Origin: Zygnema circumcarinatum SAG 698-1b
Taxonomy: Eukaryota > Plantae > Zygnematophyceae
NCBI GenBank assembly: GCA_037447605.1
Contig: CM074809.1
Location: forward strand, 3,276,689 to 3,340,688
DNA length: 64,000 nucleotides
Direction: 5' to 3'
Position 1 is the first letter of the stretch; every line of letters starts with the position of its first letter. Both the position numbers and the translations under genes were made by a program. This document shows, piece after piece, positions 27-63,813 of the stretch. The notes under the pieces were generated by a model, which did no database searches, was not told the DNA's origin, and saw only the letters and a list, made by a program, of their open reading frames with translations.

Positions 27-3000
27 ATGGATCTGAAGATGGCCTCAGCTGGCTCCTTGGTGACTGAGTATTCTGCTCTGAGCAGTGATCATGTGGCCAC
101 TTTTAGCTGCTATTCCAGAAGAGCGAAGGTGGGGGGGACTGCTCCAACACGTGCAGTTAGGGCAGTTGGGCTCTCTGGAGGGGGAGATTCCCTCTTGGTA
201 CTATCAACTGCAAAGAGCAGTATCCGGCAATGCAGGTTTGCGTCTGTGGCAGGAAAGGAAGTGCTTTCACATCGTCTTTGCAACCTTAGGCCGAGGAGAT
301 TTGCCGGAGCCGGAAATGTCTCAGGTCTGCGGAATTCGGAGAGATGCTCAGGCCGCCGGTTCTTGATAGCCGCCCAGAGGGATGCCAGTCGCGATACTAT
401 TTCGGATACGGAATTGCCGGAACCGTCGCACCCCTCTGTAGAATTAAAGGTGAGTTCATCTACTTTGTTGCCTGTTCTGGATTTGAGTCGCATCCAGACT
501 TTCAAGGGCACCACCTTTAGGCAACTATTGATTCAAATTTAGTTGAAGCCGTTCGTTTTTGTCTGCATAGAGACTGCAGGGTCTGTAAGTTCAGGTCCAG
601 CTCGTAAGAGTTGTAGTTTTGGATGATCTTCTCTGTAATTGGAATTTCTTAACGCTCGGCATTCTTCCTTTGCTCTGGGGTTGGCCTGATGCTGGAGTGG
701 CCAACCATTTTAATTCTCCTTTCTTCAATCAAGCCCGAGAGAAAGAGCTCTTCATGCTTCCCTTAGCAGGATGAACCTGGTTTGACGAGTCCCGGCCTTT
801 CTTAGGTTGCTGATTGTGCGCTGCTCTGCGCCTCAGTTGATGCGGTAGTTTTGAGGGGCTGAGGTTTTTGAAAGGATTTCTCTCCTGGCTAGTGTACGTT
901 CAACTCATTTCTAGAGATGTATAGGTATCAAATTCACTTGTGCTGTGGTTGGTACGCTGTAAATGGATGGCTTCTAGCTGCGGTTGAGTCTCTGAGGTTA
1001 GCGATTGAGCGTTTCCTAGTGCCCGTATTCAATTGTTTAGTTCTTAGGTTTGTCTACAACTTTGAAAGTATTAGTAAAGGACCTCAGAGGTATTCTATGT
1101 ATTGAATCGATATCGCATGGAAGATTGGGCACCGTACATGCATCATGGGCGAACCCTTAGTGGATGATACTTACGCAGCACAAGCAACTGCAATCTTTGA
1201 AGGTTTTCAGGATGGTCCAATGTTCCTCTGTAGTGTTCTATAACTTATTAGAGACGGTTATAGTGGCCTTTTGAAGGATTCCAAGTTTGGCACAGTCATT
1301 CATATCGAACTTTTAAAAGGGGCAGGCTGAAAACGTATTTTAGTATTCCGCTTCAATTAGGGGTCGGTCAAGTGATAAGGTCATAAACTTGTAGATAGAG
1401 AACCTGACATGGTTTGTCAAAATATTGTTTGATTGTGATTAAATTTCTACTGCGTACTGCAAAACTGAATTTGAAATTGATGGCTTCCTTAAGTCAGTTT
1501 GCTGTTTTGTACGGCCGTCCTTGAGGGCTCTTACCACTTTAGAAGTTGTATAAGGTCAGAGCAGGAAGGACTCTTAACACCATCCTAAGCATGGAAATGA
1601 CTAGTTTGACAGTGAGAACAATATAACCTAAAAATCAGACAGATAAACGGGTGCAAGCATTGGCCGACCACTCTGAACTATTTCAATTCAACGGGGCTGT
1701 ACAAGCAGTTGCCAGTCCTATGCCAAAAGGTGTTGGCAGAATTGGTTGTCCCTTTCATTGTCGTCCCTCTTCTGAGCCCGCAAGTATTCTGCTGAAGCTC
1801 GATTTTCCTTTCCTTTGCTGAGAGTTCTTTGCTTGTGCTTGAATCCTTGCAGATAACTGGAGGGGATAGGGGCACATGGAAGCAGTTACGGCCCACAGGT
1901 GCGCTGCTTGGCTTGGCTGGTTTGGTCGCCGGACTTAACTTGGAAGGGCCGGGCTCAGTATTAGAGGCTATGGGGGTGTTGGCACTAATAGTAACAGTGC
2001 ATGAATGTGGCCACTTTATGGCTGCTCGGCTTCAAAACATCCATGTTACCAAGTTTTCCATTGGGTTTGGGCCGATCCTTACTAAGTTTCAGGGGAAGAA
2101 TGTTGAGTATACACTCCGAGCAATTCCATTAGGAGGTTTTGTAGCCTTTCCAGATGATGACCCTGACAGTGACTTTGCTCCTGACGACCCCGACCTTTTG
2201 AAGAATCGTCCTATTCTTGATCGAGCCATTGTGATAAGTGCTGGGGTTATAGCGAATGCCATCTTTGCATATACAGTGTTGTTCACGCAAGTGAACACAG
2301 TCGGAGTTTTGGAACAAACGTTTGGACCTGGAGTTGCTGTTCCAGATGTGATTCAAAACTCAGCGGCTGCCCGGGGGGGGCTGCAAAGTGGAGACATTGT
2401 GTTAGCTGTGAATGGTCACCCACTTATGTCAAACCAAGCCTCAGTGATTGAGTTAGTGGAAGCCATAAAACAGAGTGGAGGGCAAGGGGTTCAGTTCGAC
2501 CTTTTGAGAGGGGAGCAGACCTTCTCTTTGGAGATTGTATCTGATAAGGCGAGTGATGGGAGCGGCCGTATTGGGGTGCAATTGGCTCCAAATGCGGAAT
2601 CTGAGCGAGTGAAGGCGAAGGATTTGGGTGAAGCAACATCATTGGCTTCAGAAGAATTCATGCGGTTACTCTTTACTGTAGTCGACGGTCTCAAACAGAT
2701 AGTCTTCAACTTCTCTCAGACTGCAGAGAGGGTATCTGGCCCGGTCGCTATTGTAGCTGTGGGAGCGGAAGTGGCAAGATCTGATGCAGCGGGACTCTTC
2801 CAGTTTGCAGCGATTGTAAATTTAAACTTGGCAGTGGTGAATATCCTCCCTCTCCCTGCACTTGACGGCGGTTACTTGGCACTCCTCTGTGTGGAGGCAT
2901 TGAGGGGCGGTAGAAAGCTTCCAAGTGGAGTGGAGCAGGGAATCATGTCATCCGGGTTGTTGCTGCTATTGGGAGTAGGGGTTGTACTAATGGTAAGGGA

Positions 3001-3037
3001 CACATTGAATTTAGGGTTTCTGGATGGCATATTATAG
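27..3037 (+). CDS. ARASP: Plastid membrane zinc metalloprotease, RseP/site-2 protease (M50) family with PDZ domain; 2 exons (27-449, 1853-3037)
   Basis: Exon 2 has HECGH (HExxH), GPILTKFQG..EYTLRAIPLGGFV, NRP..DRAIVISAGVIAN, a PDZ-like GDIVLAVNG and NILPLPALDGG (NxxPxxxLDG). Exon 1 is a Ser/Arg/Ala-rich transit-peptide-like ORF ending AAG|GTGAGT at 449; the acceptor TTGCAG|ATA at 1852/1853 is phase-0 compatible. Start may be ATG 27 or 39. Confidence 0.92.
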
Positions 3038-43346: not shown

Positions 43347-46300
43347 TGTTAGTGTATAGTAGTTAGTCACTAGACAAGTTGTTGTTGGTAGATCAATTTG
43401 TGTGCCTAGGTTGTAGTGGCCTTGTGTGATGACTGGCCAGATTTACTGGGCTGTGGCATTGACTTTGGTTGGTGGAGGCTGTGGTCAGTTAGATTACCAG
43501 ACTACTACTATTTTTGAATGTGATGTGGTTGCTACGTGGATCCTTGGAGTGGATCCACATGCTATGATGGCGCTAAACCTGCTGTGGGAATCCAAATAGT
43601 GACGCTGCTGCGCTAGCCTTTGGACTGCTGATTTGCGCTTGGCGCCAGTGGCGCCAGACTTGTCGGCGCGTGACATCAGGTTGTACGGAGCTGCGTCCAT
43701 GTTTGGTGGCGTGGAGACGACGCGAGAGGACCGACGCGCCATCGATCTTGGAGGCAAGGTCAGATCCTACGGCGCAAGACGTGGACCGGATGGAAGACTG
43801 AGTCGGATCTGACGGGGCTGATGTACGGGATCCGTGTAAGTCTACTAGGATCCGACGGCGCAAGATGAGGATCGGGATAGGGCCCTTGCAGGCCGCTAGT
43901 CGATGTTGTGGAACATCGTTGCAAGATGTCACGTGTGTAGTGACATACATTTAAGGACTTGTTTCCTTGAAGGCAGAGCAGTTCATTCAGGCCGCCCAGA
44001 GTTCTGCCACGCTCGTCTCGTGCGCGACACTTACATGACCTCGTGCTGTGAGGTAGTGAGCTGTGAGATTGCTGAGCGTTCATCCCAGTGGAGACCCCCC
44101 AATGTATGAGTGAATTCACTATTAAGGGATTTTAGCCAGGAGCTTTCTCCTATTCATTTCTCTCGCTATTCCGCTGTGCATTATCTGCGCTATTTATCCT
44201 TAAGAGTGGCTACGAGTGAATGTGAGAGATTTGAAGATGTCATCGTCATTGCACGCGACTCTCCGATGGAGGGTGACCCAATGAGGAATCGGACGGCAGC
44301 AGCTGGAAGGAGTCCCTCCACCAACAAGTGGTATCAGAGCTCATGGAGACTCGGAGGACCACGTCAAGTTCAGCATTCCGGCCTTTGATGGGCAGGATTA
44401 CAAGGCGTGGAGATGGAGGTTGGTTCCCCTGCTTGTAGGCAAGGGGTTGCTTGGGTATGTTGATGGCAGCATCAAGGCGCCGGAGTTACCGGTTGGAGCC
44501 TCAGCGGAGCAGCAGTCGGAGCACGACGTGGCGCTCGCACGATGGAAAGCCAAGGACAACAAGGCCCTGACGCAGATTGTAATGAGCGTTAGAGGAAGTC
44601 CGTCCTCTATGCTTTATGATCTGAAGACCTCTCATGCCATGTGGAGATGCCTTGAAGAAATGTATGATGTAAAAGACAATGTGACGATCGTCAGTCTTTA
44701 CACGCAGCTAGGCAAGATGAAGATGACTTCAGATGAGAAACTAGAAGCTTATATGGTCAGGTTTGATGCTCTGATGGAGAGGTTCATAGCCCTTGGGAAA
44801 CCATTAGAGGCAGACCATAAGATAAGCCAGTTTCTAGGGGGTTTGACCAGTAGATTCGATGTGGCAGTGGCGGCTTTGAGGACAGTCCTGACTAATACCA
44901 CGATGACTCTTGAGCAAGTCAAGCGTAGGATAAAGGAGGAGGACTCCATTCAGGCGGTCGGCAGCCCTGAGGAGAAAGTGCTTGCGTTGCACACTCGACC
45001 GAATCGAAGAGGAGGCGCCTCGAAGTCAGCCCGAGGAGAACGCTCGGCGATTACGTGTTATACGTGTGGCAAGATCGGCCACTACTCCAGCGATTGCTTC
45101 AAGAACAGAGGCAGCCAAGAGAAGGGAGGAAACGCGACTTCATCCAGCAAGAAGGAGAAGAAGGCGTTCAGTGGCACTTGCTTCAAATGCAAGAAGAGAG
45201 GCCACAGGAGTTCAGACTGCAAGGTAGCAGTTGAGAACAACCTCATGCTGGCGGAGAATACTGAGAATGCGTTTGTTGGAAGGATTCAGGAAGAGGATCC
45301 GAAGCGGCCGTGGCTGATTGATTCCGGCGCTTCTACGCATATGTGCGGAGACACATCGATGTTCTCCAAGCTCGACGACTTGAGAAGACACGCTCAGTCC
45401 ATTCAGCAACCGGTGAAGGAGTCACCGTGACGAGAGGTGGAGCCGTGAGGATGGTACTCGGAGACGGCTCGGTCATCAATGAAGAAGACATACAAGAGAA
45501 GTTGTCAATTGGTGACGTTCTTCACACCCCTGAGCTAAAGCAGAATTTCATGTCTGTTAGCCAAGTGTGTAAGAAAGGATACAGTGTTCTGTTTGAGGAG
45601 AAGTCATGCGTGGCCATCCATACAGAAACTGGGAGACAGCTGTTTAGGGGTTATGAGAGAGGAGGGCTGTATTATCTTGATTATAAGAGGGAGAATTATG
45701 AGCATGCCAATGCAATCTCAGAGAATGCCGTAGATGTATGGCATAGAAGACTTGGTCACTTACACCATAGAGGAATGCAGCAGTTGGCTGCGAAGGGGTT
45801 AGTCCGTGGGCTAGACCCGGGTGTAGTGGAGAAGGAGCTTGGGTTGTGCCAGGAGTGTGTGGAGGGCAAGGCGCACAGGAGACCATTCGTGAGGAGTGGA
45901 GACGAGTCCTATCGAGCGCGAGAAAAGTTGGAATTGGTACATTCTGACTTGTGTGGCCCAGTTACACCGGCGACCAACGGCGGAGCACGTTACTTCGTCA
46001 CGTTCCTCGACGATTACTCGAGGAAGATTTGGATTACGCTCCTCAAGAACAAGTCAGAGGCTTTCGGAGCCTTTCGAGATTGGCTGAACCAGGCGGAGAC
46101 AGAATCAGGACAGAAGCTGAAGGCTTTGCGCTCAGACAATGGCGGCGAATTCAAATCGAAGGAGTTCGCAGAGTTCCTGAAGAACCGCGGTATAAGGCAT
46201 GAATTCTCTGCCCCCTATTCCCCTCAGAGCAATGGAGCAGCTGAGCGAGTGAATCGGACATTGGGGGACATGGCTCGGACCATGTTGATTGATTCCCCCT

Positions 46301-48109
46301 TTCCAGCTTCTTTTTGGGGAGAAGCGGTTTCTACTGCTGCGTACATTAGAAACAGATGTCCGTCTTCTGTTCTGAAAGACCAGGTCCCTGAGCAGATGTG
46401 GAGTGGGAGGAAGCCCACAGTTTCCCACCTGAGGACCTTTGGCGCGCGATGCTGGGCTGCACTGCCCAAGGCGCGACAGAAGAAGAAGTTTGACCCCCGA
46501 GCGGTGGAGGGTTATGTTCTCGGCTATAACACCAACAGCCGCACGTATAGGGTGTGGAACCCTCGACTGCAGGAGGTCCTGAGCACGAGGGACATTACAG
46601 TTGATGAGGGAAGTGCTGTTGAGCGTGTTGCAGACTCTCAGATCTTTCCTCCAGCGAAAGCGGATTTCGAGATCGTGTATGAGGAGGGAGAGACGAGTGG
46701 AGAGCGTGATGTCACTGTGCAGGATGCCAGCACATCACAGAGTGAAGGAGCCGAGCCAGCAGCTGCGTCAAGCGAGCCTGCTGATGTTGGAGAGTCGCCA
46801 GAGGAGGCGCATGCGGAGGAGCCGCAGAATTCGACGGAGACGATTCCAGTGCACACTCAGTTGAGTGAGGAAGAGGAGAACTCCGTGGAGACGGTGCCGC
46901 TGCACACGCAAGAGTCAGAGGACCTTGAAGCGGCCGAGAGAGAGGCTATGTTAGCTAACATGCCTCCAGGTTTTGTACCCGGACTCTACTTCTATCCGAG
47001 AGGACGAAGCGCGAAGGAGATTCGGAAGAGCAGTCGGGACAGGAGGCGACCAGATCGGTACTCGCCTGAGAACAACCTCATCCAAGAAAGAGTGCCTTCA
47101 GATTCAGCTGACCTCGTGGGAGTTGCCCATTGCTTTATGATCACGGAACCACAGACCTTTGAGGAAGCACACGACGGAGTCGATGGCGACAAATGGCGGG
47201 TGGCGATCGATAGCGAGTGGGACAGCTTGATAGAGAACGGCACGTGGAGGTTGGAGGAGCTGCCTCAAGGGAGGCGAGCTANNNNNNNNNNGGCCAACCA
47301 GAGTGATTGGCTATACAGACTCAGATTGGGGCGGTGATGTAGATACATCGCGCTCGACTTCAGGTTTCATTTACCTGTATGGAGGTGGAGCGATTTCGTG
47401 GAGCTCCAAGTTGCAGGACTCGGTAGCGTTATCGAGTACAGAGGGCGAGTACATGGGTGCTTGTCATGCTGCAAAGGAGGGCGTGTGGTTTCAGCAGTTC
47501 TTTGATGAATGCAAGAGAGAACAACGCCCGATTACCTTGTTCACCGATAATCAATCATCGATTGCCCTGGTGGGAAACCCGGTGTTTCACAAGCGGACCA
47601 AGCACATCAGAGTGCAGTACCATTATGTACGGGAGTTGGTTCGAGGAGGGTTTGATCGATGTGAAGTTCGTAGGCACGAAGGAGCAAGCCGCCGATATGC
47701 TGACTAAAGGAGTTAGCGGAGAAACCCTGCTGGTGAATGGCAGGTTGGTTGGGCTGGGGCCCATGCAAAACTAAAGTCCCAAAGAGGGGGATTGTTAGTG
47801 TATAGTAGTTAGTCACTAGACAAGTTGTTGTTGGGACATTAGTTTTGTGTGCGTGTGTTGTGTGTGTGGCCCTTGGCGGCGATGTGCGCCTAGACCGACG
47901 GGCNNNNNNNNNNAGGAGCTTTCTCCTATTCATTTCTCTCTGTTATTCCGCTGTGCATTATTTGCTGTGATTCACTCTGTGAGTAAAATGGGCTATGAGT
48001 GAATGTGAGAGATTTGAAGATGTCATCGTCGATTGGAACGCGAACTCCGATGGAGGGTGACCCGAATGGAGGAACGGACGGTAGCAGTGGAGGAGTCCCT
48101 CCACCAACA
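43347..48109 (+). mobile_element. Ty1/copia LTR retrotransposon copy 1, full length (5' LTR 43347-44326, 3' LTR 47793-48109 with an internal gap, TSD CCATC)
   Basis: LTRs run TGTTAGTG...CCAACA; PBS TGGTATCAGAGC (tRNAiMet) at 44329-44340; PPT AAAGAGGGGGAT at 47781-47792; CCATC at 43342-43346 and 48110-48114. Confidence 0.95.
44345..47774 (+). pseudogene. Copia gag-pol of copy 1 (Gag with two CCHC knuckles, protease, integrase, RT largely hidden in a gap, RNase H)
   Basis: CYTCGKIGHYSSDC and CFKCKKRGHRSSDC; WLIDSGASTHM; WHRRLGH...CQECVEGK; VHSDLCGP / RSDNGGEF / NGAAERVNRT (DDE); GYTDSDWGGD, SSTEGEY, TDNQS, KHIRVQYHYVRE, ADMLTK. Order PR-INT-RT-RH is copia. Frameshifts near 45380 and 47650. Confidence 0.93.
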
Positions 48110-49617: not shown

Positions 49618-51086
49618 TGTTGGAGCATGGATCTGCTGGCTGCTCCCAGCGCCACCTCGCGTGTCGCCCTCCATTGGAACTCCGGTTCCCACCGATGAAG
49701 ACATCTTCACTCTATCTCACTTCACTCATAGCCCATAACTCACAGAATGAACGCAGAGACGAGCACAGCGAAAATCACACACGAGAGAGTATAGGAGAAA
49801 GCTCACGGCTCTAAAACTCCTTTATAATAAGAATGTCACCCACATNNNNNNNNNNGTCAACCTTTGGATTGAACGATTCGGACTTGACGCTATGCGGCGT
49901 CAGAATATCGGCGCGCGATTCATCATTGTACGGAGCTGATTCGAAATGTCGGTGGCGTGCGACGACGCGGAGTTTGACGTGTCATCTATCTTGGAGGCAG
50001 GGTCAGATCCTACGGCGCAAGACGTGGATTAGCTTAGAGTCCGACTTGGATCTGACGGAGGTGATGTACGGTATCCGTGTGAGTCGACGAGGATCCGACG
50101 GCGCAGGATGAGGATCGGGATAGGGCCCTTGCGGGCGGCTAGTTGATGTTGTGAGCTTCGTAGCATGGTAGTGTCACGGATGTTGTGACATAGTATATAG
50201 TGTGTTGTTTTGTTTGGTTGTTAATCTTTAACTTCTGGATTATCAACGTAGTTATTGTAGACTCTGAGAAGCTGAATGCTCGTGTTGCTTAACATTACAC
50301 TTGCTTGTGCTGCGAGGTAGTGGGCTTTTGAGTTTATTGGGCTATTTGAGAGGGGGTCTCTCATTTTGTGTTGATAAGATTATTATTAAGGAGTTTTAAG
50401 GCCGAGAGCTTTCTCCTATCCTTTTCTCTCTGTTATTCCGCTGTGCATATTCTGTGAGGTTCACTATGTGAGTAAAATGGGCTATGAGTGAATGTGAGAG
50501 TTTGGGAAATGTCATCATCGATTGGAACGCAAACTCCGATGGAAGGTGATGAGAGTGGAGAAGCCGGCCGGCCGGCCGGCGACCGTGGAGGAGTCTCTGC
50601 ATCAACAGCTCCTGCACCTATCGCCTCTATTTTTCCCTTTGTTAGTGCTGTTGGAGCATGGATCTGCTGGCTGCTCCCAGCGCCACCTCGCGTGTCGCCC
50701 TCCATTGGAACTCCGGTTCCCACCGATGAAGACATCTTCACTCTATCTCACTTCACTCATAGCCCATAACTCACAGAATGAACGCAGAGACGAGCACAGC
50801 GAAAATCACACACGAGAGAGTATAGGAGAAAGCTCACGGCTCTAAAACTCCTTTATAATAAGAATGTCACCCACATNNNNNNNNNNGGACCGCACTAAGG
50901 GTCTGACGCGGTTCCGCCGACATCACCGACATCCTCCGCGCCCGAAAAGCGTACGGGCCACCGACATTTGGCCCGACCGTATTTCCTAGGAACACTACTA
51001 GCAGATCTCATGTTTCCCAACTGAGGACCACAACAATGTTAGTGTGAACCCGTACAATGTCTAACTATAGCACACTAACACTAACA
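49618..51086 (-). mobile_element. Reverse-oriented LTR (solo or gap-collapsed element) of a third copia-related family (TSD AGTGC)
   Basis: The minus strand runs TGTTAGTGTTAGTGTG (51086) to CCAACA (49618; 50649 in the duplicated block). AGTGC lies at 49613-49617 and 51087-51091. Confidence 0.78.
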
Positions 51087-51441
51087 AGTGCTTTATTATT
51101 TTTATTCTCGCTCGAGCCCTCTCCTTTTCCCTCTTGGCGGTACCAGCAGTTTTCTTAGCACTCTCGAGTCTGCCACAAGGACGCGCTAGGGCGATCCTTT
51201 GGGGGGTCCATTATTCGCTTTGGCACACCTTTGTAGCGAAACGCTATAGATCGGTTGTATGGCCTAGTACTTACATCCATGGTTGCCTTTTAATGGTAAA
51301 GCACATGTGTGGGTACCGGGAGGTCCTGTGTTCAAACGCTCTTGAGGGCGGGTTTATTACAATGGTATCAGAGCCTAATTCCCGGTATTTGCGATCCACC
51401 CTAAAAACACCGTGATCTCTGAGCATGGTACGGGGTTCCAA

Positions 51442-52901
51442 TGTAACAAACCCGCCTCCAGCAAGGTTTGATCTCAGGACCTCACGGTATTCACCTAAGT
51501 GCTTTACCATTAAAGGCAACCGCGGATGTAAGTACTAGGTTATACACTCCATGTATACTGTTCATTACATTCCTCCCCACCTAAACCGTGCTCGTCCTCG
51601 AGCACCATGCTCAAGGGTTTTTACGAGCGCGTTCAAGCTCCTTCATCATATGGACCTACAGACTTGGCTGCCACAGCTCAACCAATCTGTACCATGCTCA
51701 GAGATCACGGTGTTTTTAGGGTGGATTGTGTTGATGTATAGGTACATCAAGGTGTTGGTACTTAGTTCCTAGCATGGATGTTGTCCAAGAGATCATGTGT
51801 TGATGTAGGGGCAATGTCATGCATGAATGGTCATGTTTGGTGTAGGACCAAACATGGGGGATGCCCAAATGTTAGGGCAATGTACGGAAGGTCTAGGGAA
51901 GGTCTAGGGTCGTAGATTTACGGCTTAGGCTGAGACCGTACCAAAGGGGGTGCGCTGGATGCGCATTAATTGGTCTGGAGCGTGACCGTACGGACGGCNN
52001 NNNNNNNNGTCACGTGACAAAGGCCGCCATGGTATATGAGGGAGCAAGCTTGGCTCCCTACTTACTCACTCACTCGGAACGTTATGCTGCTCAACCTTCG
52101 TGTTAGGAAGAGTAGGCAGAGGCTGAGGCCTTGAGGAGTCCGGCCTTGTGTAGGGGGTCGTGAAAGAACTATCTCTCATCATGGTTAGCTCTAGTGAAAG
52201 AGTTAGAGATGTGTCCCTCTCGTGTTGAGTTAGAGGAGAAGTTCAAGCAAGCATATAGTGCTTAGCTACTACAGTTGGGGTGTAAGCTGCCTATCAGTGG
52301 ATAGGGTAGTGCTCATGAGAGAAGGAGAATCGAGCATAAGGTTATATGTAGATTTCCTAAGAGAGCTTGTATTACACCTATGAATGTTAAGGAGTTTTAG
52401 GGCCGAGGGCTTTCTCCTTATACTTGTGTCATTTGTCACATGTGAGTCCTTGTGTTGGATTGGAGTGATGGATGAGTGGAGGCGAACATTGTATGGGCGG
52501 TGTGTCGCATCACATGTGGAGACCATTGGAGGAGCGTGGAGCTGAAGGAGCCAAGACCATGGAGGAGATGAAGAAGTGTTCTTGTAGGTGGCGCGTTTTG
52601 TTTTCCGCTGTGCGCACCTGGTGAGGGGAGGAAGAGAAGGCATATCGTGGCGGAAGCGGTATGTGGCCTAAGTAGAAGTGGAAGAAGTTTTAGAGTTTCA
52701 CTAAAGCATGTTTTATCCTTCCACTAGTCTCTCTCTACTGCCCCCTCACACCAACAGATTGCAAATACCGGTCCTTAGGCTCTGATATCAATGTAACAAA
52801 CCCTTGCCTCCAGCAGGATTCGATTTCAAGTGCTTTACCATTAAGAGGCAACCGCGGATGTAAATACTAGGTCATACACTCCCTGTATACCGTTTGTTAC
52901 A
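51442..52901 (-). mobile_element. TRIM-2 (diverged subfamily) inserted in reverse into TRIM-1; LTRs 51442-51569 and 52792-52901
   Basis: Reverse-strand LTR/PPT (TTCCTCCCCAC at 51570) and PBS (GGCTCTGATATCAA at ~52778-52791); same internal sequence as TRIM-1 and TRIM-3. TSD not clear. Confidence 0.82.
51729..52756 (+). mobile_element. Solo LTR of the large-LTR (LARD-like) family inside TRIM-2 (TSD GATTG)
   Basis: TGTTGATGTATAGGTACATCAAGG...CTCACACCAACA, with GATTG at 51724-51728 and 52757-52761. Same LTR as at 57409 and 62185; shortened by an N gap. Confidence 0.88.
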
Positions 52902-53850
52902 TCGAACCCTTACTGGCCTGAGGGGCTAAAGCCGTAGTCCATGTGTTGAAAGAGCTTGAACGCTGCTCGTGAAAACCCTTGAGTGCGCTCAAGGACGAGC
53001 TCGATTTACGTGGGGAGGAATGTAGCAAAATGCTATACATCGGTTGTATGGCCTAGTATTTACATCCGCGGTTTCCTTTTAATGGTAAAGCACATGTGTG
53101 GGTACCGGGAGGTCTTGTGTTTGAACCCTCCAAAGGGCGGGTTTATTACACCTTCGTGCGCTTTGGGCGTCTGCACAGGCCTTTTTAGGGTGCCTTTTCC
53201 CTTCGGTTGCTGATGATACTCACATTCTCTACCTTGTTGATCAGGTGGTTGCTGCTTTTACTGATTTCAGTACTCGGCTGGCTTCCTTGCAGCTTACTGT
53301 CAATTTGTCCAAATGTTTTGCTTGGTCTCCAGTTGGTCTCCCCTCTTCCCTTTCGCTTTCGTCGGGTATACAGACTTGCTCGGACGCGATTGGTATCCGC
53401 GTCCTTGGTTGCCCTTTTGGGGCGTCATCATATGTTGATCGTTTTGTGGAGGATGCTTTGGTTGAGGATGTGTCTCAAGTTGATGAGTTGCCTCATCTTT
53501 CTGATCCTCAGGTGGCTTTTTCCTTACTCGTTGTTTTGCCTTACGTCCCTCTTACCTTTTACGAACCCTCCCTCCTACCGTTGCTTTTCTCGCTTCCTTG
53601 CAATCTTTCGACGAGCATTTATTTTCTGTGTCATCGCCTTTTAGGTGCGAGTATTTTTGACCGGCCGGAAGGCCCGCTTGCTCGTTTGCAAGCCTCGCTT
53701 CCTATTCTTGGCGGTTAGGGGCTTGTCCCAACTACGCGGGTTGCATCCCCGGGCTTTTTGAGTAGTTGGGCTCTTGTTGCTACGGTGTTAGCTTCGCGTT
53801 TCCTTGTGGATGATCGTCCGTTGCTTCAGTCCGTTGTTGCTCATGTTGAT

Positions 53851-54247
53851 TGTAACCAAACCCGCCCCTGGCAGGGTTCGAACACAGGACCTCCCGGTAC
53901 CCACACATGTGCTTTACCATTAAAAGGCAACCGCGGATGTAAGTATTAGACCGTACAACACATGTATAGCGTTTCGCTATATTCCTCCCCACCTAAACCG
54001 TGCTCGTCCTCGAGCACACAACTCAAGGGTTTTCACGAGCTGCATTCAAGCTCCTTCAACACATGGGACGATGTACGGTTCAGACCTTTTGGCCAACCGT
54101 ACCATGCTCGGAGGTCACGGTGTTTTTAGGGTGGATCGCAAATACCGGGAATTAGGCTCTGACAGGCCATGTAACCAAACTCGCCTCTGGCAGGGTTCGA
54201 ACACAGGACCTCCCGGTACCCACACATGTGCTTTACCATTAAAAGGC
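53851..54247 (-). mobile_element. TRIM-3, reverse orientation: 3' LTR 53851-53981, internal region 53982-54169 (188 bp), 5' LTR from 54170 interrupted by copia copy 2
   Basis: Same LTR, PPT and degenerate PBS as TRIM-1. This copy shows the uninterrupted internal domain and the best-preserved GTTCGAACC box. Confidence 0.88.
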
Positions 54248-57200
54248 TGTTAGTGTATAGTAGTTAGTCACTAGACAAGTTGTTGTTGGGACATTAGTTT
54301 TGTGTGCGTGTGTTGTGTGTGGCCCTTGGCGGCGATGTGTGCCTAGACCGACAGGCGGCGGTACAGACTTTGGTCGGTGGAGAGAGCGGGCGCGCGGAGC
54401 CGAAGTGACGAGGCTGACGTGACGATTTGAAATGTGACGGGCGCGACGCGACGCTGAGCGTAATTGAAGATGTGATGCGACGCCAAACCGCGCGTAAATT
54501 TGAAGTGACGCGGGCGCCGCGCCAGCCTTTGGATTGGCTGATTTGACTTGCCGCGGCGGGCGCTGCATTGTCGGGCGCTACGCTGATTCAGAATTGTACG
54601 GAGCTGGCCAATTGTCGGGTATGCGGAGACGACGCTGGTGATTGACGCGGCTATCTATCTTGGAGGCAAGGTCAGATCCTACGGCGCAAGACGTGGATTG
54701 AACGAAAGGCTGAGTGGATCCGATGGAAGCCAAGAGCTGGATCCGTGTGAGTCTACGAGGATCCGACGGCGCAGAATTAGGATCGGGATAGGGCCCTTGC
54801 AAGCTGCTAGTCGATGTTGTGAAGCTTCATAGCATGTTGTCACGTGTGAAGTGACATTGTATTTAAGGATTGGCTTTTGTTGTGTAGGCTAATTCATTCA
54901 GGCTGTTGTAGTCTCTGTTATGCTGTTTGCTCGTGTTGCAACACTACACTTGCTCGTGCTGCGAGGTAGTGAGCTGTGAGATTGCTGAGCGGCCGATTTG
55001 AGAGGGGGTCTCTCAATGTATGAGTGAATTCATTATTAAGGAGTTTTAGAGCCAGGAACTTTCTCCTATCCTTTTCTCTTTGTTATTCCGCTGTGCATTA
55101 TTCTGTGAGATTCACTCTATGAGTAAAATGGGCTATGAGTGAATGTGAGAGAGATTTGGAATGTCATCATCGATTGGAACGCGAACTCTGATGGAGGGTG
55201 ACCCGAACGGAGGAACGGACGGGAGCAGTGGAGGAGTCCTTGCACCAACAAGTGGTATCAAAGCTTATGGAGACTCGGAGGACCACGTCAAGTTTAGTAT
55301 TCTGGCCTTTGATGGGCAGGATTACAAAGCATGGAGATGGAGGTTGGTTCCCCTGCTTGTTGGCAAGGGGTTGCTTGGGTATGTTGATGGCAGCATCAAG
55401 GCGCCGGAGTTACCGGTTGGAGCCTCTGCGGAGCAGCAGTCGGAGCACGACGTGGCGCTCGCGCGATGGAGAGCCAAGGACAACAAGGCCCTGACGCAGA
55501 TTGTAATGAGCGTAAGAGGAAGTCCGTCCTCTATGCTATATGATCTGAAAACCTCTCATGCTATGTGGAGATGCCTAGAGGAAATGTATGATNNNNNNNN
55601 NNAGATGAAGATGACTTCAGATGAGAAACTAGAAGCTTATATGGTCAGGTTTGATGCTCTGATGGAGAGGTTCATAGCCTTGGGGAAACCATTAGAGGCA
55701 GACCATAAGATAAGCCAGTTTCTAGGGGGTTTGACCAGTAGATTTGATGTAGCAGTGGTGGCTTTGAGGACAGTCCTGACTAATACCACGATGACTCTTG
55801 AGCAAGTCAGGCGTAGGATAAAGGAGGAGGACTCCATCGAAGATGTCGGCAGCCCTGAGGAGAAAGTGCTTGCATTGCACACTCGACCGAATCGAAGAGG
55901 AGGCGCCCCGAAGTCAGCCCGAGGAGAACGCTCGGCGATTACGTGTTATACGTGTGGCAAGATCGGCCACTACTCCAGCGATTGCTTCAAGAACAGAGGC
56001 AGCAAAGAGGAGGAAACGTGACTTCATCCGTCAAGAAGGAGAAGAAGGCGTTCAGTGGCACGTGCTTCAAATGCAAGAAGAGAGGCCACAGGAGTTCAGA
56101 CTGCAAGGTAGCAGTTGAGAACAACCTCTTGCTGGTAGAGAATACTGAGAATGCGTTTGTGGGAAGGATTCAGGTAGAGGATCCGAAGCAGCCGTGGCTG
56201 ATTGATTCCGGCGCTTCTACGCATATGTGCGGAGACACATCGATGTTCTCCAAGCTTGACAACTTGGAGAAGACACGCTCAGTCCATTCAGCAACCGGTG
56301 AAGGAGTCACCGTGACAAGAGGTGGAGCCGTGAGGATGGTCCTCGGAGACGGCTCGGTCATCAATGAAGAAGACATACAAGAGAAGTTGTCAATTGGTGA
56401 CGTTCTTCACACCCCNNNNNNNNNNTGCCCATTGCTTTATGATCACGGAGCCACAGACCTTTGAGGAAGCACACGACGGAGTCGATGGCGACAAATGGCT
56501 GGTGGCGATCGATAGCGAGTAGGACAGCTTGATAGAGAACGGCACGTGGAGGTTGGAGGAGCTGCCTCAAGGGAGGCGAGCTATTGGCTGCAAATGGGTC
56601 TTCAAAGTCAAGAGGAAGGCAGACGGAAGCGTGGACAGGTACAAGGCGTGGCTAGTGGCGAAGGGATATGCCCAGCAGTATGGGGTTGACTACATGGAGA
56701 CGTTCGCTCCAGTGGTAAAGTTCAATTCCTTGAGAGCCTTGATTTCCATCGCAGCGGCTGAAGGAATGCATGTCCATCAGCTGGACATCAAGACGGCATT
56801 CCTGTACGGAGATCTAACGGAAGAGATCTACATGGAGCAGCCGGAGGGGAAGGTGGTCCCAGGAAAGGAACACCTAGTCTGTCGACTAGTGAAGAGCCTA
56901 TATGGTTTGAAGCAGGCGCCTAGAGTGTGGTATGAGAAGATAGATGATCTTCTGAGGAGGAATGGTTTCGACCGATTCGAAACAGATCATTCCGTGTACC
57001 GTCAAGGAGAGGGGGCGGACATCATGTTCGTCAGGATCTACGTCGATGATCTCATAATGGTGAGCCTCTCGCTTGAAAGAATCAGTTCCTTGAAAGAGTT
57101 GCTTCAGGCAAACTTCAAGATGTCAGATTTGGGGGAGGCGCAGTATCTGCTTGGAATGCAGTTGAAGAGGGGGCAGGATGGCAGCTTATTCTTGTGTCAG

Positions 57201-57408
57201 AAGAAGTATGCATCGGATATCCTTGCCCGGTTCCACATGGAAGATTCTAGGCCATGCTCCAGCCCGATGGAGGTAGGCGCTAGATTGTCGAAGGAGATGT
57301 CACCTTCGAGTGCAGCAGAGGCGCAGAAGATGTTCGGAGTGCCTTATAGGTCTGCGATTGGGAGTCTGATGTACCTGATGATTGGAATGCGTCCGGATCT
57401 GGCGAAAG
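54248..57408 (+). mobile_element. Ty1/copia copy 2 (5' LTR 54248-55250, PBS, gag, protease, gap, RT), interrupted at 57409
   Basis: Same family as copy 1. RT ORF 56529-57408 has IGCKWVFKVK, YKAWLVAKGYAQQYGVDYMETFAPV, HQLDIKTAFLYG, LVKSLYGLKQAPR, IYVDDL and YRSAIGSLMYL. Frameshift near 56010. The 3' end is outside the window. Confidence 0.93.
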
Positions 57409-60400
57409 TGTTGATGTATAGGTACATCAAGGTGTTGGTACTTAGTTCCTAGCATGGATGTTGTCCAAGAGATCATGTGTTGATGTAGGGGCAATGTCAT
57501 GCATGAATGGTCATGTTTGGTGTAGGACCAAACATGGGGGGTGCCCAAAGTGCTAGGGCATGGTACGGAAGGTCTAGGGAAGGTCTAGGGTCGTAGATTT
57601 ACGGCTTAGGCTTAGACCGTACCAAAGGGGGTGCGCTGGATGCGCATTAATTGATCTGGAGCGCGACTGTACGGACGGCGCGCGACTGTACGGACGACGC
57701 GGAAATGTTCGGACGCGGAGGTCTTTGGCGCGAAAGGCGGATCTGCACTAAGCGACATGATTGGTCGCGCCAGAGTGCAGATCGCGACGCAATCTCCAAG
57801 CGGAACATGACTCATGATTAGGTATGTACTTTCGAGGTACGGACATTGGTCGGTGCTGAGGCCCAGCGCGGCGGAGTCAGAAGTGACGTGGCACGACGCG
57901 GCAGATTCGAAAGTGACAAGGCGCGACATCAGAATGTCGGCGCAGTGAATCAGGAGTGAGGAGGCGCTGCATCAGCAGTGTCTCATGTGGAGGACAGTGG
58001 CGAATCGGAAGGCGCCACGTGTCAGATTCGGGGTAAGTAAGCCTGTAGGCCTAGGGTCGGGTGGCGACCGTAGGCTTACGGGGTCCCACATACAGTTGAG
58101 TTAGTGAGGAGTCAGATCGTACGGTGCAGGACGAGGATCAAGATGAGGCTGAGTTGGATCCGACGGGCTGAGGAGCTGGATCCGTGTGAGCCAAGGAGGA
58201 TCCGACGGAGCACGATTAAGATCAGGATAAGGCCCTTGCAAGGCGCCGCATGGGTGGCCGTGACATGACGGCGTCACGTGACAAAGGCCGCCATGGTATA
58301 TGAGGGAGCAAGCTTGGCTTCCTACTTACCTCACTCATACTCACCACCTCGAGACGCTATGCTGCCTCAACCTTCGTTAGAAGAAGAGAAAGGGCAGAGC
58401 GAGAGGCCATCTTGAGGAGTCCGGCCTGTAGGGGTCGAAAGAACTGTCTCTCATCATGGTTAGCTCTAGTGAAAGAGTTATGGATGTGTCCCTCTCTCGT
58501 TGAGGTAGAGGAGAAGTTCAAGCAAGCATGTTGTGCTTAGCGTATCGCAGTTGCGTAAGCTGCCTATCGCTGATAGGTAGTGCTATGAGGAGGAGAATCG
58601 GCACAAGGTTATATGTAGATTTCCTAAGAGAGCTTTATTACACCTATGAACGTATGAGTTTTAGGGCCGGTGGCTTTTCCTTATACTGGCTATCCGTCAT
58701 ACGCCAGCCCCAGGTTGGATTGGAGTGATGGATGAGTGGAGGCTAATTATTGTGGGCGGTGTGTCGATCACACGCGGAGACCATTGGAGGAGCGCTGGAG
58801 TCAAGGGAGCTCTAGACCATGGAGGAGACGAAGAAGTGTTCTCAGAAAAGCGACGCTGCTTTGTTATCCGGCCAGCGCCAAGCATCTCGGTGAGGGGAGG
58901 AAGAGAAGGCATATCGTGGCGAAAGCGGTATGTGGCCTAAGTAGAAGTGGAAGAAGTTTTAGAGTTTCACTCTAGCATGTTTTATCCTTCCACTAGTCTC
59001 CTTCTCACACCAACAAACGGTATCGCAGCCTATGGTTGAAGCCCTCGATATCGGCGCTTAAGGTCTGGCCCTAGAGCTTATGGGTGAAACTCTAAAGAGT
59101 ACAAGTGATGTTGAGGGTCCCGAGCGCATCGGCGAGTGGATGCAGCTCCCTTGAGAGTATATGGGTTCCAAAGGAGAGATCCTTGACTAGAGAAAGAAAT
59201 GAAGGAATGGGCTTTCGGGGAGCCTGGGCATTGGCTCAAAGGTACTAAGAGGGATAGATATGGTCAAACCTCCTAGTCACGCTTGATGGTTCTGCTTGTA
59301 GCAAAGTGTTGTCGAAATAGTCACTTTGGAGAAGCATGAAGGAGAGAATGCGTTTAGAGTTCAGTCTTGATGTACCATGGAAAGAGTGCGTAAAGAAGGC
59401 TGACAATCCATATTCCGGTCTGGCTGCTTTTGAGAGACTTGGCTCGAAAGTCAAGGTCCAACGGGCGTGGAGGTGGTGCATTGAGTTGCACACTTTCGAG
59501 GTGACCCAATCCTCAAATGTGAGTTGGAGGTGGCAATAGTGAGGGACGCATTGCCGGCGCGGACTCACCTTGACGCCATATGCTCGGATATGCGTCGAAG
59601 GCTGGGTTGTTTCCATCAAAGGATTCGGAGAGGAGGACTTTGACGGCACTCTCGAGAAGTGAGAGGGCTCCGCCATATCGGTGATTGCCATGGTATGTGG
59701 AGGGGATGACCCTTCAAGCACACTCTGGGATTGTGAGACTAGCTGGGAGTTGGGAGATCAATGAACTAGAATCTTCACATAGGTTGTGGGAGAGGCTAGG
59801 AGAGGTGCTGGGTGGCAAGGAGTGCCACGGATGGAAAGAGTTCACTTCAAATGCGTTTGGGGTGAAGGAGGCCCAAGATCTAGGGTCTAAGAGAGAGAGC
59901 TGCCCAAGGAACCACATTGTTAAATCCCACTAAGTCCGGTGGACGAGCTAGTGGAATTGATAGTCACTAAGATGTTGAAGTGATGGACCACTAAGGAGGA
60001 GTTTAGGAATTCCCCAAGGAGCAGTTGAGGAGATCAATCTCGAGGCAGGGAAGGTCGTGCAACTTCCCCCTATGAGGAGTCTACTTCAATGAGGAGTAGA
60101 TGTACAGGCGAGTAGAATGGATAGAGTCAAAAGGAATTGACAACCATTCAAGGAGGGGCAAGGCTGAAGTCGGACAAGGAGGATTCCACTCCAAGTCGAC
60201 ATTTTGGAGCCGTGAGCTCGTGGAGATCACATTGCTAACGAACTTGCAGAGCTTATCTTGTGGAGGGATCATTCGGATCCAAGGAGACGGCATGGTGGCT
60301 CAAGTGTGTCCAGACGTGGACGGAATCTTTGTTTGAAGAGTTTGCTGGGAGTGCACGCCTAGTTTACTCTCTGAACAAGATAGTGACCTATTCGGCGGTG

Positions 60401-63400
60401 GTTTGAAGCTGTCGATCTCAAGAGAAGCCGGGTTATAGTCGGGTGGATCTCGGCGAGAAGTGGCGCATGTACCGCCGGAAGACAAGTGAAGTACTCCTTT
60501 AGCCACAAAAGTTTGTTTGAAATTTTCCTTAAAAAAGCGAATTTATTTTGGAGGCAATCAAGTGGAGTTAGATGCCGGTTGCTGTGAGTTACATCACATG
60601 CAGATGGCGACCCTCATGATGGGATAGAGCGGAGTAGCTTGTACTTTTCAAAGAGGAAGGTGCGCGAATGGACCCGTTGCACGATAGCCAGGAGCTCAAG
60701 ATCAAGGAACTCTGGACACCTAAGCTAAGAGCTTGAAGATGCTTGCAAGGACCAGGATCTTGAGAGGTGCCTAGGTCCAGAAGTCACAAGGAGGGAAGAG
60801 ACGCCGACATGGAGCTAGTGTGATCGCACTCATGAGGGGATGGCGCTCTTATGCAAGGTACCGCACCCTTGCATACCTTGTGTGTGATAGAGTTTTGAGG
60901 GGGAGGTTTCGTTTCCCTCAAAGGAAGAAGATAGTAAGACTCGGCGACTTGGTTGGAGGAGGATGCTACAAGGGTAGCCCAATTGGCCCAATCAAGCTTA
61001 TCATTAGCGGGGGAGCAGCTAGACGATGGACCGGTGATGCTGACTTCAGATGACTTCTCTCCGAGATAGGAGACATGAAGAAGGTGCTATGATAGAGGAG
61101 GCTGAGCAGTCTTGAAGAGTTGAAGCGACGAACTTGAAGGTTTGAGGAGCTGCGAGTGATCATGGAGATCAAGAGGCGGCAAGGAGCGCTTGAAGGCGCG
61201 GCTAGTGGCAACGGAATCAAGGGACGAGCAGAGTGTGGAGAATGTCATCATGATGATGGTGCAGTACACTTCCCTTCGTGGTATTCCTTAGAAAGTCACT
61301 AAGCTAGAGTGAGGTGTTTTCAGATGCATATGAAAGGTGCAAGAATTACACTCTTTGGAGAAATTGACATGCAATGAAGAAAGTGTCAAGCAGGGTTTGT
61401 AGGACCCTGATAAGGGAAGAGGAACATCCGGTTTGCCAGCTCATTGATGGAGAACATGAGCAGAATTGAGACCCCAAAGGTGGAGTACAAGAGGAGGGTG
61501 CCAAGATGTCGAAGCTAGAGTTGTGCTTTGGAGGACCAGGCCTTGTACAGGTAGGCTGTTTAGCTTAAGAGGGGGTAGGCAAGGTGTTCAGATTTGACCT
61601 TGGCAGATGGCGCTGAGGAGAGATTGTCCATGGGGGACATGTGAGTAGAGAGAATGTCCATGGGAGGACATGTGAGTTCATAGTGCGAGGTCCCAGGATC
61701 GTGTAGTGGAAGTTGTTAGAGAAGGCGGCACTTCATTTGGATGGAGGCCTACAACAAGTGGCGAGAGTACCACAAGGAGGATTCATGGGACAGATATGAA
61801 CGACCTCATGTTTATGAGGGGGTGAGCGGCATATGGAGAAGCTGTCTTCATGGATATGTGAGTTGGGAGGAGAAGATGGGACTTCTCAGGTTTACCTTGG
61901 AGGATGAATTCCTTTGAAGAGTTCGAGGTTGAAGGTTCCTCACCACATTGTCGACAAGGGGTAAATAACTACCAAGGAGATTGTGATGTGCAGGATTGCA
62001 CATGGGCGAAGACCATCTATTGGAAGAGGTGGCCCGGGGGAGAGTGCAATGGCTGTTGCATTCACGGCGGAATCAATTCAAGGGAATTGATGTGCAAGCC
62101 AAGAAGGCATGCCTAGTTAGTTGCTGCTGCTTTAGGTGCCATGTTAGAGAAGCTTGCAAGGAACTTACGTACCAAGAGGGGGATTGTTGATGTATAGGTA
62201 CATCAAGGTGTTGGTACTTAGTTCCTCGCATGGCTGTTGTCCAAGAGATCATGTGTTGATGTATGGGCAATGTCTTGCATGAATGGTCATGTTTGGTGTA
62301 GGACCAAACATGGGGGGTGCCCAAAGTGCTAGGGCATGGCAATGGAAGGTCTAGGAAGGTTCAGTATCGTGATTTACTACTAGGCTGCATCAGTATCAGG
62401 GGTGCGCCGGATGCCGCGCATTAATCGATCTCGAGCGCTGACCAGACGGGACGGGCGCTACGATCAGACGGACGACGCGAAATGTTCGACGCTGAGGTTC
62501 GGCGCGCTTGATTCGCATCTGCTTACATGATTGGTCGCGCTGTGAGTGCGTGACGCGACGCACTTCCAAGCGGAACATGACTCATGATTAGGTATGTACT
62601 TTCAGGTACCTGACATTGGTCGGTACGCAGGCCCGGGCCGCTGGGCGAGTCGTAAGTGACGGGCACGCACGCCGCGCATTCGAAAGGACAAGGCGCGACA
62701 TCGTAATGTCGGGCGCTAGCGAATCGAGGAGGAGGGGCGCCGCGATCGCCAGTTGTCTCTGGCGTGGAGGACAAGGGCTTAATTCGTGGAAGGCTTCACG
62801 GTCGCATTCGGGTGGCCTCGTGAGGGCCTAGGTCGGTGGCGACCGTGAGGGCTTACGGGGTCCCACACACATGTACCGAAGTTAGTGAGGAGTCGACGAC
62901 GGCAGTGACGGTGGATCAAGATGAGGTCAATTGATCCGGACGGGCCGAGGAGCCGGATCCGTAGTCAAGGGAGGATCCGACCGGAGCACGCATTAAGATC
63001 GTGATAAGGCCCCTTTGCAAGGCCGCATGGGTGGCCGCGGACATGACGGGCCACGCGACAAAGGCCGCCATGGTATATGAGGGAGCAAGTTTGGCTTCCT
63101 ACTTACCACACCATACCACTCACCGAACGCTATGCCGCCTTCAACCTTCGCAAGCCAGAAGAGTAGGCAGAGGGCGAGGAATTGAGGAGTCCGGCCTTGT
63201 GTAGGGGGTCGTGAAAGAACTGTCTCTCATCATGGTTAGCTCTAGTGAAAGAGTTATAGATGTGTCCCTCTCGTGTTGAGGTAGAGGAGAAGTTCAAGCA
63301 AGCATGTTGTGCTTAGCTACCAAGTAGCTTGGGTGTAAGTCAGCTTCATCGCTGGATAGGTAGTGCTCAGAGAGTGAGGAGAACGGGCATAAGGTTATAT

Positions 63401-63813
63401 GTAGATTTCCTAAGAGAGCTTGCAGGTCACAGTCTATGAATGTTAAGGAGTTTTAGCCGCAGGGCTTTCTCCTTATACTTCTGTGTCATCCGGTCACATG
63501 TGAGTCCTGTGTTGGATTGGAGTGATGGCTTTATGGGAGGCTTACTCATTGTATGGGCGTGTAGTCGCATCACACGTGAGAGACTATTGAGGAGCTTGGA
63601 GTCAGAAGGAGCCGAGACCATGGAGGAGATGAAGAAGTGTTCTTGTAGGTGACGCGTTTTGTTATCCGCTGTGCGCACCTGGTGAGGGGAAGAGAAGGCA
63701 TATCGTGGCGGAAGCGGTATGTGGACTAAGTAGAAGTGGAAGAGGTTTTGGAGTTTCACTCAAGCATGTTTTATCCTTCCACTAGTCTCTCCTTCTGCCC
63801 CCTCACACCAACA
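57409..63813 (+). mobile_element. Non-autonomous large-LTR element (LARD-like): LTR 57409-59015, ~3.2-kb internal region without intact ORF, LTR 62185-63813
   Basis: ~1.6-kb LTRs TGTTGATG...CCAACA; degenerate PBS (AACGGTATCGCAGCC) after the first; PPT AAGAGGGGGAT before the second; no pol domains recognisable. Confidence 0.85.

Follow-up and report, generated by a model that had tools for sequence, protein, structure and literature searches.

The closest described relative of the elements considered here is Helenus, a TRIM with a tRNA-derived LTR that was published in 2024 by Kojima under the class name TRIMp3 (PMC10886601), so that the view taken in a first-pass annotation of this locus, that Cassandra has no known tRNA-type equivalent, no longer holds. 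Helenus includes one Selaginella family, Helenus-1_SMo of Selaginella moellendorffii, and insertion of a SINE into an LTR has been proposed as the source of its tRNA part (PMC10886601). In Cassandra itself, the LTR harbors a 5S rDNA core of ~70 bp with an A box, an IE and a C box (PMC10853983). The locus described below probably contains three insertions of one abundant, non-autonomous and non-coding Helenus-type TRIM family with an LTR core of tRNA descent. Its assignment to the Helenus type (TRIMp3) follows from the tRNA blocks, B box and canonical spacing retained in this core, and judged by these sequence features the elements are a new family of the published Helenus kind rather than a new class.

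Region 51232-54247 of the 64-kb window (the whole stretch of DNA that was analyzed) holds six LTRs of ~130 nt, belonging to two subfamilies and forming three TRIMs (Table). This composition had been recognized at first reading, together with a Met PBS, a PPT and a lack of coding capacity, and LTR pairs, PBS, PPT and ORF comparison now agree with it; specifically, stop-free stretches compared between the TRIM copies revealed no reading frame common to them. The family plan consists of an LTR of ~130 nt, an initiator-Met PBS, an internal region of ~190 nt, a PPT and a second LTR, with apparent target duplications of 5 bp. PBS sites number five in the window vs 0.26 expected (20-fold over chance), each beside an LTR end, and GGGGAGGAA purine tracts adjoin the 3' LTRs. 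In their paired TG..CA LTRs, PBS and PPT, lengths of 427-454 nt and lack of coding capacity, the elements conform to TRIMs.

Table. Features of the three TRIMs and of the insert within the inner element (window coordinates).
Feature	Position	Strand	Remarks
Outer TRIM, subfamily 1	51232-53150	+	LTR pair 89.2% identical; colinear with copy C after excision
Outer TRIM 5' LTR, TG..CA, 130 nt	51232-51361	+	
Outer TRIM PBS TGGTATCAGAGC, initiator-Met type	51363-51374	+	
Conserved 38-nt internal block, outer TRIM	51394-51431	+	100% identical to inner block 51689-51726 (-); 95% to 54099-54136 (-)
Inner TRIM, subfamily 2, within internal region of outer TRIM	51442-52901	-	LTR pair 89.7% identical, colinear alignment
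Inner TRIM 3' LTR; B-box region GAGATCAAACC	51442-51569	-	
Inner TRIM polypurine tract, sense AGGTGGGGAGGAA	51570-51582	-	
Solo-LTR-like TG..CA insert splitting inner TRIM	51729-52756	+	TSD GATTG at 51724-51728 and 52757-52761
Inner TRIM PBS TGATATCAGAGC, 1 mismatch	52779-52790	-	
Inner TRIM 5' LTR; 21-nt deletion spans anticodon-arm-like part	52792-52901	-	
Outer TRIM polypurine tract GTGGGGAGGAA, adjoining 3' LTR	53010-53020	+	direct reading
Outer TRIM 3' LTR	53021-53150	+	
Copy C, youngest TRIM, subfamily 1	53851-54247	-	LTRs 97.4% identical over 78 nt
Copy C 3' LTR, 131 nt ('best LTR' of first-pass annotation)	53851-53981	-	
tRNA-like module, copy C 3' LTR (tRNA positions 17-69)	53867-53919	-	nhmmer 11.8-12.0 bits, E 0.01
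B box GTTCGAACC, copy C 3' LTR	53875-53883	-	
Copy C polypurine tract, sense AGGTGGGGAGGAA	53982-53994	-	
Copy C PBS, damaged, sense TGGCCTGTCAGAGCC	54155-54169	-	
Copy C 5' LTR, final 78 nt only	54170-54247	-	
tRNA-like module, copy C 5' LTR	54186-54238	-	nhmmer 12.1 bits, E 0.008
B box, copy C 5' LTR	54194-54202	-	

The TRIMs do not lie side by side: pairing of LTRs by identity places a minus-strand TRIM inside a plus-strand TRIM. Neighboring inverted LTRs are just 76-79% alike, vs 89.2%, 89.7% and 97.4% within the assigned pairs, and with nested inserts removed (leaving 454 nt of the outer element, and 427 nt of the inner element once its own insert is excised) the elements are colinear. 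The inner TRIM is flanked by TCCAA and TCGAA, which agree as a TSD at four of five positions, while the outer TRIM is bordered by ACCTT (51227-51231) and (A)CCTT (53150-53154), a TSD match requiring a 1-nt slip. The 5' LTR of copy C is interrupted at 54247 by another LTR element, starting with TGTTAG at 54248. An N gap (51999-52008) falls inside the solo-LTR-like insert and outside all TRIM parts; two relatives of this insert, at 57408-59000 and 62185-63813, contain ~595 nt at the corresponding position, and the real gap length is probably ~0.6 kb. The matching insert halves and the TSDs speak for the present order and orientation on either side of the gap. That the inverted LTR pairs are artefacts assembled from short contigs, and not genuine elements, is very improbable. 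The region was indeed assembled from ~1-kb contigs linked by 10-N gaps, and includes a perfect 38-nt inverted repeat (51394-51431 and 51689-51726), yet no junction contains a gap, all junctions are accounted for by nesting (TG..CA ends and 5-bp duplications GATTG/GATTG, TCCAA/TCGAA and ACCTT/(A)CCTT), and the nesting model yields the correct LTR pairs by identity. Both this reading and that of a palindromic element were dropped in favor of nesting on the grounds of LTR identities, TSDs and colinearity.

LTR positions ~45-118 resemble tRNA. Retained are a D-loop/3' D-stem block AATGGTAAAGCAC, a variable loop and 5' T arm GGAGGTCCTG, and a near-perfect B box GTTCGAACC, the head of the module reading AATGGTAAAGCAC...GGAGGTCCTGNGTTCGAACC. 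The B box had been located at 53875-53883 and also in the LTR beginning at 54170, and direct reading confirmed both occurrences; as TTCGAA is a palindrome, however, the strand cannot be assigned from the B box by itself. A sequence profile built from 19 tRNAs and run with nhmmer (E-values referring to the whole 64-kb window) matched the copy C LTRs without gaps over 53 nt, from D loop to T arm and on the sense strand only. These two LTRs are the best two matches across the window at 12 bits, a score reached by 0 of 2000 dinucleotide shuffles (maximum 5.2 bits), in support of the original claim of an LTR core that is tRNA-like at the sequence level; the positive control Helenus-1_SMo scored 19.4 bits with the same profile. 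Older copies gave 2.6-4.3 bits or nothing, limiting significance to copy C and the consensus, and both significant matches are therefore the two LTRs of one element. The proposed canonical spacing between D loop and T loop was likewise borne out: the D-loop GG and TTCGA are separated by 34 nt, a spacing shared with canonical tRNA and with Helenus-1_SMo. Allowing up to two mismatches, the pattern TGGTARAGC-N27-GTTCRANNC occurs five times in the window vs 0.04 expected, always within TRIM LTRs, and the copy C 3' LTR module fits it with no mismatch. Genome-wide majority letters (sense GCACTGGTGTGGGTACCGG) also restore a 5-bp stem, CTGGT/ACCGG, at the position of the anticodon stem.

This likeness does not extend to a cloverleaf. 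The LTR core had been judged not to be a working tRNA, and its stems are indeed unpaired; the tRNA covariance signal that had been suggested as a check failed to appear. An Rfam search at E<=10, covering the 4.5-kb region and the 151-nt LTR alone, returned noise matches only, with no tRNA (RF00005) and no ribozyme family, so that the elements do not qualify as hammerhead retrozymes. Because Rfam E-values are multiplied by 4227 families, which could hide a weak tRNA likeness, a custom tRNA covariance model (R1) was built, and it gave 2.9-3.0 bits, under random hairpins. ARAGORN found no tRNA in the LTRs at thresholds down to 75%; a call appeared solely at -ps70, a setting that also yielded calls in 253 of 1000 shuffles, whereas Helenus-1_SMo was recognized at the default threshold as tRNA-Arg. 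The idea that the B box might be more conserved than the rest of the LTR found no support, as it is among the least conserved parts across the six copies (core identity of 0.85 vs an LTR mean of 0.90), and is intact in copy C only. The best conserved part of the LTR is the D-arm/A-box block, in which 18 of 20 columns do not vary and the longest invariant stretch spans 15 (permutation p 0.03), and the D-arm block is invariant across all six LTRs. Compared with the box motifs of Helenus, both boxes of the present family carry one mismatch (TTGCC...TGG vs TRGCY...YGG in box A, and TGTTC vs GGTTC in box B).

It could be argued that the family is an ordinary Pol II TRIM, whose resemblance to tRNA is a chance or convergent pair of motifs without tRNA ancestry. 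We consider this unlikely, even though the covariance signal is missing, ARAGORN calls the LTR no better than noise, significance in the tRNA profile is confined to the LTRs of one element, a TATA-like CTATACAT is conserved ~30 nt upstream and the putative A box contains TTTT. Against it stand the 53-nt gap-free colinear match to the tRNA profile (0/2000 shuffles, top of the window), the exactly canonical spacing, and an independent similarity to the bona fide tRNA-derived LTR of Helenus. Given their tRNA-like sequence with a B box, the units could also be taken not for LTRs but for tRNA pseudogenes or copies of a SINE; however, the TG..CA bounds, the direct pairs enclosing PBS, internal region and PPT, and the lack of an A-rich or LINE-like tail make this extremely improbable. 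Finally, the first-pass annotation had raised the rival view of a Cassandra relative with a 5S-derived promoter, TTAAR-N15-16-AAGTACTAGG, on the opposite strand. This motif pair does exist on the plus strand, for instance at 51510-51545, yet it runs antisense to the PBS, the 130-nt LTR contrasts with a Cassandra LTR and its ~70-bp 5S core (PMC10853983), and 5S_rRNA (RF00001) has no match at E<=10 in either the 4.5-kb region or the 151-nt LTR alone, so that a 5S origin is effectively refuted, with a negligible probability left to it. As far as its sequence can tell, the most probable ancestor of the middle part of the LTR is a tRNA or the head of a tRNA-derived SINE.

In subfamily 1 the sense strand carries TTTT within the A-box/D-loop region, and no T run of at least four follows the tRNA-like module, unlike in three Helenus LTRs. 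An efficient Pol III genomic transcript is disfavored because the TTTT sits inside the A-box region. The TATA-like CTATACAT occupies LTR positions 13-20, ~30 nt upstream of the module, and is kept in all full LTRs. We tentatively infer that in master copies the module may serve, or may once have served, as an internal Pol III promoter of type 2. The chances are about even that the transposition template is made by Pol II, presumably starting downstream of CTATACAT, while production of this template by Pol III today appears possible but doubtful. A more specific proposal strikes us as decidedly unlikely, namely an active TRIMp3 transcribed by Pol III in a host other than Selaginella moellendorffii, with the weak T4 of the A-box region as a leaky terminator. 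Under this proposal transcription would pass T4 in the 5' LTR but stop at it in the 3' LTR, and the resulting very short R of ~15 nt would coincide with the most conserved LTR block, CCGCGGTTGCCTTTT; if true, it would show how a Pol III promoter could yield a full LTR-to-LTR template.

Mobilization may occur in trans, with copies reverse-transcribed and integrated by an autonomous LTR element also primed by initiator-Met tRNA. In a search for such a partner, no similarity beyond the PBS was found between the post-PBS sequence of the TRIMs and the Copia elements of the window. Copia elements carrying the same PBS sit beside the TRIMs. The family is abundant and recently active: 494 contigs of one sequencing run fall on 340 nt, 100 of them at >=99% identity, and in run X3 the depth is ~10 over unique flank vs 2,000-39,000 over the TRIM element. 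The depth profile of one run presumed to be RNA resembles that of DNA runs, a comparison relating to contigs only. A metagenome scan with the 20-mer GCCTTTTAATGGTAAAGCAC returned two unrelated low-GC contigs with ~34 nt matching and no tRNA there, a full-text literature search with the core 13-mer returned only an unrelated primer, and Pfam had no match for the LINE-like ORF at 53245-53718.

Since the idea of a tRNA-type TRIM has already been published, the value of this family is incremental. To our knowledge, Helenus-type TRIMs have been reported in plants from one species only, and as a single family; the present one, whose host belongs to another lineage, would widen the range over which the class is known. 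As an abundant and recently active family, it would also allow functional promoters to be told from relics among tRNA-like LTR cores. In annotation, tRNA-like LTRs may be taken for SINEs or tRNA pseudogenes, while nested TRIM copies can resemble inverted-repeat elements.

Among known systems, canonical Pol II plant TRIMs share the size, architecture, nesting behavior and abundance of the present family, but are devoid of its small-RNA-like LTR core. Cassandra is likewise a TRIM of plants that has an initiator-Met PBS and, in its LTR, a segment resembling a small-RNA gene, although its LTRs are longer than the ~130-nt LTRs seen here. SINEs lack an LTR pair as well as PBS and PPT, and depend on LINEs for their mobility. 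Those derived from tRNA (SINE2) share with the module a decayed tRNA head that bears A and B boxes, and are a probable source of the module, which in the present family sits within TG..CA LTRs. Helenus-1_SMo belongs to a different host, whose M50 protease is 65% identical to that of the present one, and its internal regions and LTR ends are unrelated to those of the present family. In-register identity of the tRNA-like part is just 41/76, ARAGORN calls tRNA-Arg at default in Helenus-1_SMo but not here, and T4-T6 directly follows the module in three Helenus LTRs, whereas here TTTT lies inside the A-box region and none comes after. Nevertheless, the GG-to-TTC spacing is 34 nt in both, and the variable loop and T arm agree with the Helenus-1_SMo LTR at 18 of 21 nt, a level matched by only 0-1 of 3000 shuffles.

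Self-comparison of 50500-55000 and a blastn search of the window with the best element reveal six copies of a unit of about 130 nt, together with a common internal sequence. The first-pass annotation had reported these six LTRs as three TRIMs; the observation is real, but the LTR identities correct the pairing to a nest. Neighbouring inverted LTR units share a mere 76-79% identity in pairwise comparison, ruling out the inverted-LTR elements that were the first impression for two of the three TRIMs. The pairing of LTRs by identity and the low likeness of adjacent inverted units therefore give a nested structure, in which a minus-strand subfamily 2 TRIM (51442-52901, the inner TRIM) is inserted into the internal region of a plus-strand subfamily 1 TRIM (51232-53150, the outer TRIM), and is itself split by a TG..CA element with a perfect GATTG duplication. 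Flanks are TCCAA and TCGAA for the inner TRIM, and ACCTT and (A)CCTT for the outer. After in-silico excision of the inserts these elements measure 427 and 454 nt, respectively, and align end to end (LTR, PBS, internal region, PPT, LTR) with copy C, the youngest TRIM. The 5' LTR of copy C lacks its first 52 nt, where another LTR element starts (TGTTAG at 54248), and its PBS (54155-54169, minus strand) is damaged, TGGCCTGTCAGAGCC, despite the high LTR identity. A 38-nt internal block is 100% identical between subfamilies whose LTRs are only 78% alike, and recurs in copy C at 95% identity; a role as a cis-acting packaging or dimerisation signal is conceivable.

Coordinates of the TRIM LTR pairs and of other features in the window
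Feature	Coordinates	Strand	LTR identity
Outer TRIM LTR pair	51232-51361 with 53021-53150	+	89.2%
Inner TRIM LTR pair	51442-51569 with 52792-52901	-	89.7%
Copy C LTR pair (subfamily 1)	53851-53981 with 54170-54247	-	97.4%
38-nt internal block	51394-51431; 51689-51726; 54099-54136 (copy C)		
Innermost insert	51729-52756		
N run	51999-52008		
Relatives of innermost insert, parts matching contig ends at gap	57408-57679 + 58273-59000; 62185-62454 + 63052-63813		
Copia-type elements	44329-47337; 54248-57452		
M50 protease ORF	1829-3037		
ORF between outer TRIM and copy C	53245-53718		

The innermost insert is solo-LTR-like, with TG..CA ends, and contains an N run that lies outside every TRIM part. 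Contig ends at this gap match two relatives of the insert. In these relatives the aligned parts are separated by about 595 nt, so the 10-N gap probably represents some 0.6 kb of solo LTR. Order and orientation across the gap are supported by matching element halves and by duplications on either side. An initiator-Met PBS at 63816 follows the relatives.

The PBS TGGTATCAGAGC occurs at five sites in the window, against 0.26 expected, all adjoining LTR ends, and three of the five belong to Copia-type elements. Two such elements (gag, integrase, RVT_2) have the same initiator-Met PBS as the TRIM, one PBS (at 55253) falling within a gag ORF (55161-56021); sequence comparison of both with the TRIM found no similarity outside the PBS. 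Each TRIM 3' LTR is adjoined by a purine tract (GGGGAGGAA), and no reading frame common to the copies was found. Contigs of four public runs indicate a very abundant family with young members: one run yielded 494 contigs on 340 nt, 100 of them at least 99% alike, and in another, depth was about 10 on unique flank versus thousands over the element, depth not being equivalent to copy number. Elsewhere in the window, an uninterrupted 402-aa ORF encodes an M50 protease of the chloroplast ARASP type that includes a PDZ domain, its nearest named relatives (Diphasiastrum, Marchantia, Sphagnum, Selaginella) being 65-68% identical, with 65% for Selaginella and the maximum for Diphasiastrum and Marchantia. 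Between the outer TRIM and copy C lies an ORF that by eye resembles a LINE reverse transcriptase tail (NLSKC, ILGxPxG), but Pfam returned no match for it.

The tRNA-like core previously proposed for the LTR is borne out at the level of sequence but not by structure tests. Against a profile HMM of 19 E. coli class-I tRNAs, both copy C LTRs align gap-free over tRNA positions 17-69 (12.0 and 12.1 bits; 0 of 2000 shuffles above 5.2 bits) and are the two top matches on both strands of the whole window (E 0.008 and 0.01), other LTR copies ranking third and seventh; the Helenus-1_SMo LTR, a tRNA-derived Selaginella control, reaches 19.4 bits. The canonical spacing also holds, D-loop GG to T-loop TTC spanning 34 nt in the LTR, in Helenus-1_SMo and in canonical tRNA, and matches to the spaced D-loop/B-box pattern are confined to TRIM LTRs. 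Aligned locally, the LTR agrees with that of Helenus-1_SMo at 18/21 positions in GGAGGTCCTGNGTTCNANCCC, a match equalled by 0-1 of 3000 shuffles. Family majority letters alter the copy C sequence to form a 5-bp stem at the expected anticodon-stem place; this version covers one 131-nt LTR for scoring only and is not a full-length family consensus.

Rfam, in contrast, matched neither tRNA nor 5S at E<=10 in 4.5 kb or in the 151-nt LTR alone. Since each Rfam E-value carries a factor of 4227 for the number of families, a covariance model was built from the same 19 tRNAs with the cloverleaf supplied, and there the LTR modules score 2.9-3.0 bits, under random hairpins, so that covariance signal for tRNA is absent. 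ARAGORN made no tRNA call across the window and called isolated LTRs only at 70% of threshold, a level at which it also made calls in 253 of 1000 dinucleotide shuffles; the published Helenus-1_SMo LTR was called tRNA-Arg at default threshold. Thus the module is not a tRNA, and its sequence points to a likely decayed descendant of a tRNA or tRNA-SINE head. Two otherwise unrelated low-GC metagenome contigs (L001 1944-1977, L002 3681-3714) have a common 34-nt stretch including the 20-mer GCCTTTTAATGGTAAAGCAC; no tRNA is found there, and the match is probably due to chance.

Which polymerase makes the TRIM template is a separate matter. Pol III, the maker suggested by the first-pass annotation, is a doubtful though conceivable candidate from the LTR motifs, while Pol II has about an even chance. 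In favour of Pol III, the young subfamily has a near-perfect B box, the module has tRNA-canonical spacing, and about 30 nt upstream of it is a TATA-like CTATACAT, a type of motif that assists Pol III when it precedes plant tRNA genes. Against Pol III, subfamily 1 carries TTTT within the A-box/D-loop region, with no further sense-strand T4 before the copy of this motif in the 3' LTR, and the T4-T6 found directly 3' of the tRNA-like part in three Helenus LTRs (Kojima 2024 supplement) is absent here. Conservation of the boxes is divided. The D-arm/A-box block is nearly invariant in the six LTR copies (18/20 columns, 15 of them consecutive; permutation p 0.03), whereas mean identity in the B-box core is 0.85 against an LTR mean of 0.90, the core being intact in copy C only (TTCAAA, TTTGAA, ATCAAA or ATCGAAT in the others); no majority change in the B-box region appears among the rows listed for public-run contigs. 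Because post-insertion decay is neutral, such copy-level conservation says little on master-copy function, and because the TTCGAA core is palindromic, the B box alone leaves the strand unfixed.

The first-pass annotation knew of no described tRNA-type equivalent of Cassandra, but such elements are in the literature. Helenus was defined by Kojima (2024, PMC10886601) for TRIMs from fungi, animals and one plant whose LTRs contain tRNA-derived sequence; the paper suggested that they arose when a SINE inserted into an LTR, and proposed to call TRIMs that have Pol III promoters TRIMp3. For tRNA-derived LTRs, this is still the only work cited in a 2026 survey. In Helenus-1_SMo, the plant family, from Selaginella moellendorffii, the LTR measures 120 bp and the internal part 85 bp, with a TSD of 5 bp (PMC10886601). 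Identity with it is ruled out, as neither the LTR ends nor the internal region are related and the two agree in register at 41/76 positions. Nor is the host S. moellendorffii, given the 65% identity of the M50 protease to its Selaginella counterpart. By sequence comparison, the Zygnema TRIM family is distinct from Helenus-1_SMo, a new family of a kind already described.
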